Assembly: GCA_964199315.1 (NCBI GenBank)
Contig: OZ116709.1
Span: forward strand, 2,542,001 to 2,606,000
Reading direction: 5' to 3'
DNA from: Orbicella franksi
Taxonomy: Eukaryota
DNA: 64,000 nucleotides
Shown here: positions 800-3,700 of the stretch, piece after piece
How the letters are laid out: each line of letters begins with the position of its first letter
Position numbering within the stretch: the first letter of the stretch is position 1
Program-made: the position numbers and the translations under genes
Notes under the pieces: model-generated
The model's input: the letters and a program-made list of their open reading frames with translations, nothing else
What the model was told of the DNA's origin: nothing
Database searches by the model: none

Positions 800-3700
800 T
801 CTTCCAGATCCATCAAGGCAAGGACGTAACGCTTCTGCCATCTTTGGGGCCAGCCCAAGTTTCGGACTATATCCGGCAGAGACTAAGCCTCAGTTCAGAC
901 CAGCCCCACCCAAAAGAGTCCCTGAACCCAAGAAGGTCAAAAGGAGTAATAGTGATGTAGCGCTCAGAAAAAGATCCAATCCAAGGCGGAAGTCAGGAGA
1001 TTTTAGCCAAGTGAGGAAACGCAGTGAAAGTGAGAGTGAAAATCATTTGAACGGCGTAACTTGTAACGGAAAAACTGTTTCCACTTCGATACTGTGTTCT
1101 GGATCAAAAGGGAGTGATTGCGCCGACACAGTCGCCGATAGCGTCTGTTCATTACCCGAACAGTCGCAAGATCCAAACGATTTCTCCAACAGGTATCCGC
1201 TGTTTATTCAAGTCAATAACGGTTCGCAAACCGCAAGTAAAGCGCGCATTGTAAAACCCGTTGGCAGGGCATCAAATCAAGGTTCTTACAAACAAGACGC
1301 TGCTCAAGACAAGCAGTCAGTCCGGCCTAGAAGAAGCGCCAGTTTTTCAGCGCCTAAAAAAACAGCTACTCCATCCAGACCCTCTCAATCAAGCCAGCCG
1401 GCCCAGGATACGTTGAAAAACGGAAACCTGCGCCGTGAGAAGAGTGATATCGTCAGACCTCGCCGTACGCGATCGCCATCTAATAGAACTGCTATCCCGA
1501 GTCCCGCTCGGTCAGTCTCTTCTTCTAGTCTTAAGCAGGACAATAGTTTAGTAAGCCCACGCTCTCAATCGCCAGCTGGTCTTCGGCGTGAACACAGTGA
1601 CGTCACCAAACGTCGCGCACCGCCAAGTGTAAGACGGGAAAAAAGTGACATTGTTCGACCAAGAGGCCAACTAAGAACTAACTCACCTACTGTGAGTAAT
1701 GAAAATTTAGAAGGCGACATAAGTAGGTCGTCAAGTAACAGAAGTTTAACTTCAAGTCCGTTGAGTAAATCACCGTCAAAGAGTTCAATTGAAGGCAGTC
1801 GATCTCGTTCAGGGAGTAGCAGCGAGATGTCGAAGATTCCGTCTCTTGTTCGATCGCCAGCAAGTGCTGGAAAAACAGACTCGCACGTTTCTCGTATTCC
1901 TTCTCTCACGAAGAGAAACAACAGCGAAGAACGTACTCCTCCCAAGAGTAGGATTCCATCTTCAACTAAAGGCGACAAGGCTCAAGAAGTCGCCCAGAAG
2001 TCTCAGTTGCCCACAGCCGGCCGGAAAGACAGCGCCTCACAGAAGGACAAGGCGGCAAGCAAGATTCCTTCATCTGCAGCACTGTCACAAAACAGACCTG
2101 ACTCAGCGAAAGAAAACAAAGATCCTACCGCTGCAAGTGTGCCAAATGGACATGAACCAGTTAAACAAGTGAGCAAAATCCCATCTTTCTCCAAGACTGG
2201 CATTCCCAAGTCGAAAATTCCGTCTGTAGCACGAAAAGACAGCCGCAACGAAGAACACCCGGCACTGAACGGAGAAGGACAAACACATTCTTCGGTAATT
2301 CGTAGTCCAAGTGATGCTACCAAGAGTAAGATCCCAGGTGTGTCTTCACCCCCGCAAGGAACTGGCATCCCAATGGGTGTCAGCAGGATCCCGTCATTTA
2401 CAAAGTCACCATCATCAATTAAAACACCGGAATCAAAGCAACCCAGCCCTGGAGGGTCCAAATCTTCAGAACCAGACGGACCACCAGCAAACGTGTCACG
2501 CATTCCAACGTTTCCTTCTACGCCCCCAAATAGGACCCCTGAGTCAAAGGTTCCTGTTCCTGGAGGGTCCAAGATTCCAGAACCTAAAGTCTCTACCAAG
2601 TCTCCGCCGAGCTCGTTACCAGTCGCTTCGAAGGCAAGTGGGATACCAAAGCCGGGGGAAAGCAGGATTCCTGGGTATGCTGGCGAAAAATCGACACGAA
2701 AAATTTCAAGTACAGAAAAAGAGACTGTAGCGACAGGATCACCAGTGGCTTCCTCGCCTGTGGAGACTAAGAGCAAAATTCCTTCGCTTCCCAAGCAGAC
2801 GGCGATTTCTAAGCCAAACGGAAACGAGCAAACTGCTTCCAAACCTAGAACTGGTATACCAACGCTAGGTGGGAAGCGACCCTCTATCGATCAAGACTCA
2901 CCAAGTCAGGAGGAACCTGCCACTCCTCCAAGCACACCGATTCGCGAGAATTTCTCTTCAGAATCGCCCTTAGATAAATACATTTTCACCGAGGCTAAGA
3001 AAATGGAACAGCTTCTGCGCGATGAACCCATTGAGGTATCGGTACCGGCGGAAGATTTCGACGACGACGACGAGGAAGAGTTTCTGCGCCAAGAAAAAGA
3101 AATTGAAGAAGAAGAAGAGAAAGAGCACGAGAAAGAACTACACATGTTGGACTCAAAAGAAGCCGAGGACTTGATCAGCGAAGTTTTGAAAAGTTATGCT
3201 CCTGACATTAACAAAGAAAACCAGCCAGAACTGGAAGAGGTTTCTACTGTGAAAGATGACAACAGAAACTTTAAAGAAATGGTGAATATTGATGACATCG
3301 TGCCAAAACCAACCAAAAGCGAAAATGAGCTGCCGACAAAATTAGAGGTGAAGGAAGAGAAGGTAGATAACGCCCTCAGCGAAATTAAAGTTGATTCGAA
3401 GGAAGTGAAGGAGAATGGCATTGCAGAGACAAGGAAAATAGCTGAAGTCCAGGAAGAGAAGGCCAAGAAATCAGAAGGCAAGAATAACGTACCAGACCTT
3501 AAAATTGCCATTCCAACCGAAAAGGTGGTTGAAAATGAGAAGGAAGAAAAAGTCGAGAAAGAAGCACCAAAGAGCGAAGGGCCTGCAATTGATACGTTGG
3601 GTGAATACGCCCAGCAGGCCAGGCGGTCGCGCAGTCGGCAGCGAAAAATTGTAAGCCCTGATTCAGAAGAACCCGAGAAAGAATTTGTGGCGGAATCTGT

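Follow-up and report, generated by a model that had tools for sequence, protein, structure and literature searches.

A predicted lipid-anchored, highly multivalent SxIP protein in the coral Orbicella franksi and its anthozoan relatives

A number of plus-end tracking proteins (+TIPs), among them MACF/ACF7, CLASP1/2, APC, the Navigators and Cep169, carry [ST]x[IL]P motifs in disordered, basic, Ser/Pro-rich regions (ELM class LIG_SxIP_EBH_1), and such motifs dock into a pocket of the end-binding homology (EBH) domain of EB1, an end-binding (EB) protein. Some SxIP proteins are also attached to membranes. Plus ends are connected with the plasma membrane by AMER2/FAM123A and with the endoplasmic reticulum by STIM1 (PMC5399970; PMC3649978), which use a phospholipid-binding domain and a transmembrane helix, respectively. 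In the parasite Theileria annulata, the surface protein p104 has a glycosylphosphatidylinositol (GPI) lipid anchor and recruits EB1 to the membrane through a disordered, basic, Ser/Pro-rich SxIP region; at the membrane p104 docks EB1 strongly, and retargeted to mitochondria it drags EB1 there (PMC3649978). Here we describe a protein that may belong beside these, encoded in a 64,000-nucleotide stretch of the coral Orbicella franksi (GenBank assembly GCA_964199315.1, contig OZ116709.1, forward-strand positions 2,542,001 to 2,606,000; G000:C12:2542001-2606000 in our own coordinates). We call this whole stretch the window. The open frame in question lies on the + strand at window positions 732-4241 and comprises 1169 codons.

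In our opinion, to which we attach a probability of about 55%, the product would be a farnesylated, possibly also palmitoylated EB-binding scaffold of high valency, linking growing microtubule ends to a membrane. It is like the SxIP +TIPs in its motifs and their context, and the residues flanking the motifs fit both the 9-residue rule and the preference for hydrophobic and then basic residues after SxIP that are discussed below. It is unlike them in having no sequence homology to any of them, no folded domain and a C-terminal CaaX box. The likeness to p104 extends to a lipid anchor next to a disordered basic SxIP region, but in p104 a single SxIP is functional, the N-terminal half is globular and the anchor is acquired in the secretory pathway, and its sequence is unrelated. 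AMER2 and STIM1 each have few SxIP motifs, unlike the coral protein. Judging from the sequence, the resemblance to membrane-attached SxIP +TIPs appears to be functional, and by descent the protein seems to be none of them.

The preliminary description had reported 7 SKIP, 5 SRIP, 1 SGIP, 3 TGIP and an upstream TAIP, altogether 17 [ST]xIP, and translation of the + strand returns exactly these numbers. SKIP begins at window nucleotides 1830, 2058, 2172, 2211, 2325, 2568 and 2772, SRIP at 1890, 1947, 2382, 2496 and 2661, SGIP at 2637 and TGIP at 2196, 2361 and 2850; two [ST]xLP, SQLP at 2001 and SSLP at 2610, also lie within the array. The spacing between neighbouring core motifs is 5-38 residues, with 23 as the median. 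The whole protein contains 18 Ile-Pro dipeptides, 17 of which belong to an [ST]xIP, and shuffling its residues yields on average 1.0 and never more than 5 [ST]xIP against the 17 observed. A stricter count uses the EB-binding context rule of Jiang 2012, as quoted in PMC3649978 and PMC9877351: in X1-X2-[ST]-X3-[IL]-P-X4-X5-X6 there has to be at least one Lys or Arg in X1-X4 and no Asp or Glu in X1-X6. This 9-residue rule is obeyed by 14 of 19 motifs, for which whole-protein shuffles give a mean of 0.43 and a maximum of 5; when the array alone is shuffled within its own composition, 13 rule-passing motifs stand against a mean of 0.35 and a maximum of 3. The array region (residues 354-710) contains 18% Ser, 15% Pro and 16% Lys plus Arg and has a net charge of +28, so that the basic, Ser/Pro-rich context asserted earlier is indeed present. 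The earlier impression of an unusually high copy number is borne out too, with 14 rule-passing motifs compared with 1-4 in the Navigators by the same criteria (PMC9877351) and three SxIP motifs in Cep169 (PMC4613824), although we do not claim a record.

The residues around the motifs can be compared with what is known about good EB ligands. Among 199 motifs pooled from 14 diverse homologues, 68% have Lys or Arg at x, 46% have Ser at +1, about 70% have Leu, Pro, Phe, Val or Ile at +2, and 45% have Lys or Arg at +4. Aptamers selected on EB1 favour Arg or Lys at x (PMC3967968), and according to a "dock-and-lock" study affinity is set by the hydrophobic residues right after SxIP and then by basic ones (PMC12695022). 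At the level of sequence, the pooled flanks agree with both of these independent experimental descriptions. The SKIPTPQRK peptide of MACF binds EB with a micromolar Kd (PMC12695022).

The gene is transcribed, spliced and polyadenylated. RNA contigs start exactly at 800 in two runs and at 798 in one more, and the letters that precede this point are those of exon 1 of RefSeq isoforms X2 and X3; the window begins downstream of the three alternative first exons. The RefSeq isoforms of Orbicella faveolata (XP_020604399, XP_020604400 and XP_020604401; protein length 1157 aa) differ only in a first exon of 11-27 residues, and therefore a single exon encodes nearly the whole protein. One residue differs between this exon and XP_020604400.1; the rest is identical. 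Raw stranded poly(A) reads put the RNA on the + strand, for which reason we rejected the antisense open reading frames (ORFs) of the - strand as a gene, and RNA contigs terminate at 4339-4412. Twenty runs from 7 studies contain at least half of the sampled words of the stretch, with 10 of these runs recorded as RNA, and the transcript occurs in adult colony RNA of several studies. A search of the 497-Mb assembly for paralogues found none, and the gene is single-copy.

The preliminary description had named loss of the motifs in relatives as grounds for giving up its proposal. A word-indexed search returned 45 homologue clusters, with named members from Orbicella, Oculina, Nematostella (XP_001622460, UniProt A7T104, labelled "uncharacterized"), Actinia and Actinostola, and the same search started from the most divergent member brought back the same 45 proteins. 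All 45 have SxIP motifs, 10-22 each, and the 17 homologues to which the rule was applied have 7-14 rule-passing ones. Positions were compared in an alignment of 14 diverse sequences (A1 hereafter). Every one of the 14 has the motifs at residues 355 and 394; 13 of them have those at 375 and 469, 12 have that at 539, and 10 have those at 431 and 482. The S, I and P columns of the motifs are 75% identical as against 42% for the other array columns (Mann-Whitney p=5e-13), and the contrast is larger for Ile alone (72% in motifs, 7% elsewhere). The motifs are conserved by position and number in corals and anemones, so they have not been lost in relatives. There is also turnover in their number among homologues.

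A quick tree has four groups: a sea-anemone clade with all three named anemones, a 35-member clade with Orbicella and Oculina, which presumably consists entirely of stony corals, and two further deep lineages. The array is thus kept in at least four deep lineages. An exhaustive profile search with a hidden Markov model against 1.84 billion representatives gave 18 matches, every one of them a member of the family; relatives outside it, whether bilaterian, medusozoan or other, did not turn up. As far as sequence can tell, the family would be restricted to anthozoans and conserved across hexacorallian lineages. This range rests on the detectability of a fast-evolving disordered protein, so analogues may exist elsewhere.

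In one sea anemone part of the array has been amplified. Residues from about 560 to 680 of the Actinia tenebrosa protein (P0038 in our set) consist of a 15-residue unit, H-S-G-I-P-x-P-x-V-H-A-K-P-E-T, repeated in tandem at least six times; two copies have Lys for the Pro and one has Gly for the Ser, and four bear SGIP. We regard them as a lineage-specific amplification of an SGIP-bearing unit within the array.

The protein as a whole is modelled as almost entirely disordered. In an AlphaFold2 prediction built on the 14-sequence alignment, 1063 of 1157 residues have a confidence score (predicted local distance difference test, pLDDT) below 50, among them the entire array and the whole of residues 231-731, in keeping with the disorder that had been assumed for the motif context. 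The only helices are at residues 734-752, 768-810 (as 768-794 and 797-810) and 1119-1136, and those at 734-810 have block-mean pLDDT values of 65-82. Charge is distributed unevenly, the N-terminal third being basic (+34) and the C-terminal 447 residues acidic (-34). A Pfam scan of the whole protein found no family at E<=0.1 and one spurious sub-threshold match.

At the other end of the chain the preliminary description had noted a CaaX tail, and this also holds: the box CSIM occupies positions 4227-4238 with the stop codon directly after it. The C-termini of homologues read CSIM, CAIM or CVIS, and 43 of 45 have the arrangement Cys-x(1-2)-Cys, 4-6 residues, CaaX, the two exceptions being truncated or mis-spliced models. 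The essential Cys is fourth from the end, has two largely aliphatic residues and X behind it, and is conserved, with a second candidate membrane signal, the two Cys, nearby. CaaX boxes in which X is Met or Ser are farnesyltransferase substrates, and cysteines near a CaaX box are typical palmitoylation sites, as in H-Ras. H-Ras and paralemmin represent the prenyl-palmitoyl type of anchor, and the coral protein is like them in a C-terminal CaaX that ends in Met or Ser with cysteines a few residues upstream, and unlike them in that these cysteines are at -6 and -8 instead of -2 to -5; the remainder is unrelated. We predict with good confidence that the CSIM box is prenylated.

A candidate receptor for the array is encoded in the same genome. 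The C-terminal domain of EB1 (PF03271) is found at one genome locus, G000:C12:1729043-1729162, with 65 bits, above the curated cut-off. This EBH exon reads LEKERDFYFGKLRDIE...ILYATE, and its FYFGKLR and ILYAT pocket blocks are identical to those of human EB1/EB3 chains, including 3GJO, the structure of an EB1-MACF peptide complex. The next exon supplies the tail EGFAPPEE...EEY. By these matches Orbicella has one EB1 gene with an intact SxIP pocket. A complex prediction with two copies of the 47-residue EBH exon and residues 462-494 of the coral protein (three motifs) scored 0.26 where the mark is 0.34; the EBH construct was without the C-terminal tail, which is on the next exon here and is required for the "lock" step (PMC12695022), and we count this result neither way.

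Taken together, these features suggest how the protein might work. The C-terminus would be fixed to a membrane by farnesylation of CSIM, possibly with palmitoylation of the two conserved upstream cysteines, and the basic Ser/Pro-rich middle third would offer about 14-17 SxIP signals, each of which could occupy an EBH pocket on an EB1 dimer. Individual SxIP-EB interactions are weak. An EB dimer has two pockets, and with motifs following one another at intervals of 5-38 residues (median 23) one chain could hold several EB dimers. Many weak, micromolar-class sites on one membrane-bound chain would give high avidity, to which anchoring in two dimensions would add, so that EB-decorated growing ends may be captured or held at the membrane, or EB may be concentrated there. 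Serines flanking the motifs, the RREKSD repeats and the conserved KEN motif would provide phospho-control and cell-cycle control. We hold EB binding by the array to be likely. As for the connection between microtubule ends and a membrane that was originally proposed, the motif number and context, disorder, conservation, expression, CaaX box and EB1 pocket all speak for it, while EB binding, lipidation, the target membrane and the tethering outcome are inferred.

Several points weigh against the scaffold reading. A single farnesyl group is a weak membrane signal and does not specify a compartment, and CaaX boxes also occur on microtubule and kinetochore proteins that are not at membranes. An acidic stretch of about 450 residues (net -34) separates the array from the lipid anchor. 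Five motifs fail the 9-residue rule, Gly occupies the x position in four, and the invariant M-S-K-I-P is among the failures, with Glu at -2 in Orbicella, so part of the conservation may serve another purpose. On the side of the partner, the EB1 tail has GFAPP where human EB1 has GFVIP, so the "lock" step may differ. Finally, the searchable literature contains no paper with the RefSeq or UniProt accessions of the family.

It could be argued that the whole feature is a chance product of low-complexity sequence or an annotation artefact, as the composition is biased and the "titin-like" name shows that automatic tools can be misled by it. But shuffles within the array's own composition fall far short of the rule-passing motifs observed, deep lineages keep the motifs in the same positions and the mRNA is spliced and polyadenylated, which excludes this explanation. 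More serious is the suggestion that the conserved unit S-[KR]-I-P-S-[LF] acts mainly outside EB binding, on the microtubule lattice, a kinase, a phosphatase or an anthozoan-specific reader, and that its match to SxIP is incidental. The unit indeed exceeds SxIP, with its frequent Ser at +1 and Leu, Phe, Val or Ile at +2; the invariant MSKIP violates the no-acid rule in Orbicella; and the region, with a net charge of +28 on its 357 residues, would attach non-specifically to the acidic tails of tubulin. Against this, the most conserved feature is I-P, the dipeptide that is buried in the EBH pocket, as the comparison of motif Ile with other Ile illustrates. The flanks also match independent EB-affinity data, and Pfam detects no Tau/MAP repeat or other domain. 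We therefore consider a mainly non-EB role improbable.

We also regard as unlikely a mitotic, cell-cycle-controlled EB-binding +TIP whose farnesyl tail would serve protein-protein contacts or targeting to the nuclear envelope or kinetochore, and which would be removed after mitosis through its KEN motif by the anaphase-promoting complex/cyclosome (APC/C). Farnesylated CENP-E, CENP-F, Spindly and lamins are models for such a tail, and CSIM and CAIM are CaaX boxes of the lamin type. A-K-E-N-x-[DN]-P stands at the centre of the array in all homologues except one, the conserved RRSRSRQRK could be a nuclear localisation signal, and EB1 binding to membrane-anchored p104 is cell-cycle regulated (PMC3649978). 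However, the two invariant Cys shortly before the CaaX box are more in keeping with a prenyl-palmitoyl membrane anchor, Pfam and AlphaFold2 reveal no coiled coil, kinetochore or lamin domain, and adult colonies, from which the transcript was recovered in several studies, are not obviously proliferative tissue. A further variant accepts EB binding and the membrane, and turns the outcome around: the protein would be a membrane-bound sink that sequesters EB from microtubule ends, displaces other +TIPs and locally damps microtubule dynamics. The very high valency would suit such a sink, mitochondria-targeted p104 extensively mislocalises EB1 (PMC3649978), and SxIP aptamers drive the endogenous partners of EB1 off plus ends (PMC3967968). 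Expression level and affinity would decide between sink and tether, and nothing in our data separates them; the natural membrane-linked proteins STIM1, AMER2 and p104 are described as linkers (PMC3649978, PMC5399970), and we give the sink a low chance.

Returning to the scaffold reading, it may be extended to a more specific and, in our opinion, rather doubtful form, in which an anthozoan-specific lipid-anchored chain with 10-22 EB sites nucleates a two-dimensional +TIP condensate on the membrane. If this were true, no natural SxIP ligand of higher valency would be known; phosphorylation and APC/C-dependent degradation would switch it, and it would provide a lineage-specific means of capturing microtubule ends and guiding them, perhaps in a cell type peculiar to cnidarians. 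The principle is already known; the architecture, an all-disordered chain with 10-22 SxIP, a CaaX box with two upstream Cys and a KEN motif, has not been described previously. The searchable literature has no cnidarian SxIP protein of such kind, and the sole paper there that combines SxIP and Cnidaria is a Navigator review. How stable cortical capture arises from weak SxIP-EB contacts and whether multivalency drives +TIP condensates are active questions (PMC10469336, PMC9859754), and this family would be a natural extreme case and a test object for avidity and condensation at membranes. The protein could also be used as a natural high-avidity EB-recruiting module, and a mis-named gene of corals and Nematostella would gain a testable function.

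The name "titin-like", carried by all three RefSeq isoforms, deserves a separate remark. The only likeness to titin is the Glu/Lys/Pro/Val-rich composition of the C-terminal half. We rejected titin identity, given no Ig, fibronectin-III or kinase domain, no Pfam match and a disordered AlphaFold2 model, and the name is a compositional artefact. A reading as Tau-like KXGS/PGGG repeats was rejected as well, having no Pfam support, and the same Pfam scan found none of the family domains AMER PF09422, MTUS C-terminal coiled coil or Tau/MAP tubulin-binding repeat. An Atlas feature search gave MTUS2-like (0.79) and AMER2 (0.76), but shuffled proteins reach the same range, so these hits are at chance level and serve as leads only.

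Table 1. Coordinates of the gene and of conserved or predicted features of its product (window positions; invariant residues as in alignment A1)
Feature	Position	Strand	Remark
Main coding exon	800..4241	+	All residues but the first 11-27; stop codon included
NASAIFG, conserved N-terminal motif	828..848	+	Alignment A1
RSNSDVA, conserved island	942-962	+	Alignment A1
RYPLFI, conserved island	1191-1208	+	R142, Y143, P144, F146 invariant
RRSASFS, conserved island	1329-1349	+	Alignment A1
Three L/V-R-R-E-x-S-D-[IV] repeats	1428-1454, 1581-1604, 1629-1655	+	Upstream of core array
TAIP, outlying motif (n=1)	1488..1499	+	Weakly conserved, 4/14 aligned sequences
Core array, 16 [ST]xIP and 2 [ST]xLP	1830..2861	+	Basic Ser/Pro-rich disordered region; exactly first to last core motif, 344 codons
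SAKENKDP, KEN-box-like	2103..2126	+	Mid-array; A447, K448, E449, N450, P453 invariant
Predicted helices in acidic half, blocks SPLDKYIF..KKME..LLR and EAEDLISEVLKSYAPD	2964..3206	+	AlphaFold2, alignment A1
PAIDTLG.Y.QQ.RRSRSRQRK, conserved	3582..3647	+	Invariant columns P939 to K960
KPKF[LV]IESSLGKDFY, conserved	3876..3920	+	Alignment A1; K1037, K1039, F1040, E1043, S1044, S1045, G1047, F1050, Y1051 invariant
F-E-D-V-D-L, acidic, LIR-like (LC3-interacting region)	4107..4124	+	About 35 residues before CaaX; F1114 invariant, D1116 and L1119 >=90% conserved
Tail K-C-M-C-G-R-G-G-K-C-S-I-M	4200..4238	+	C1146, C1148, C1154 invariant
3' untranslated region to poly(A) site	4242..4453	+	Loose poly(A) tails behind 4453 in raw RNA reads

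Outside the motifs, further islands of the chain are conserved (Table 1), and the acidic half holds several invariant ones, FEDVDL among them. The form [LVF]-R-R-E-x-S-D-[IVL] occurs in 2-8 copies per coral or anemone homologue and in none of the divergent P0041/P0045 lineage; these repeats resemble basophilic-kinase sites, and the region may be a regulatory phospho-region. The AKEN motif, a candidate KEN degron, is invariant in A1, and 44 of 45 homologues have it as A-K-E-N-x-[DN]-P. A conserved KEN core within a disordered region is what is expected by sequence of a KEN-box APC/C degron, and SAKENKDP hints at APC/C-dependent turnover. The RRSRSRQRK basic cluster could be a nuclear localisation signal or a membrane-binding patch. 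The helix EAEDLISEVLKSYAPD at 3159-3206 is conserved and has a hydrophobic pair-xx-pair-xx-pair pattern; in this it is reminiscent of the RII-binding helices of AKAPs, a likeness that has no Pfam support.

Close to the FEDVDL motif, three residues before it, there is a Val/Glu allele. At position 4099 the assembly has T (Val), and 95 of 95 raw RNA reads with the first mate on the minus strand read A (Glu), as do both opposite-strand reads and the contigs of two other runs, in agreement with RefSeq; T is kept in one run labelled as another organism.

Two further long ORFs of the window end in a CaaX box, and they may be part of a cluster of convergent disordered proteins with lipid tails. One, at 12765-13355 (+), encodes 196 aa and ends in CSIL; the other, at 18966-22301 (+), encodes 1111 aa, is very acidic and of low complexity, and ends in CCTIM. 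Both have W-x-x-V...DL about 35 residues before the box, like FEDVDL of the SxIP protein. Compared by BLASTP over the C-terminal 153 residues, the CCTIM ORF and the SxIP protein show no similarity.

Further features lie elsewhere in the window. Near 5061-5102 and 5471-5520 many high-depth RNA contigs stop or diverge, their loose ends differing from the window, and the segment 5060-5520 is probably a dispersed repeat common to many transcripts. Reverse-transcriptase-like ORF fragments with a YIDDIF motif are found at 34576-35463 (-), 35404-36036 (+) and 44363-44986 (+), two of them near-identical, in opposite orientation and overlapping at 35404-35463; remnants of retroelements are their probable origin. 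The assembly has 156 N at 54625-54780, and at 63471-63923 (+) a 21-bp tandem repeat forms an open frame of LYSVLTS units.

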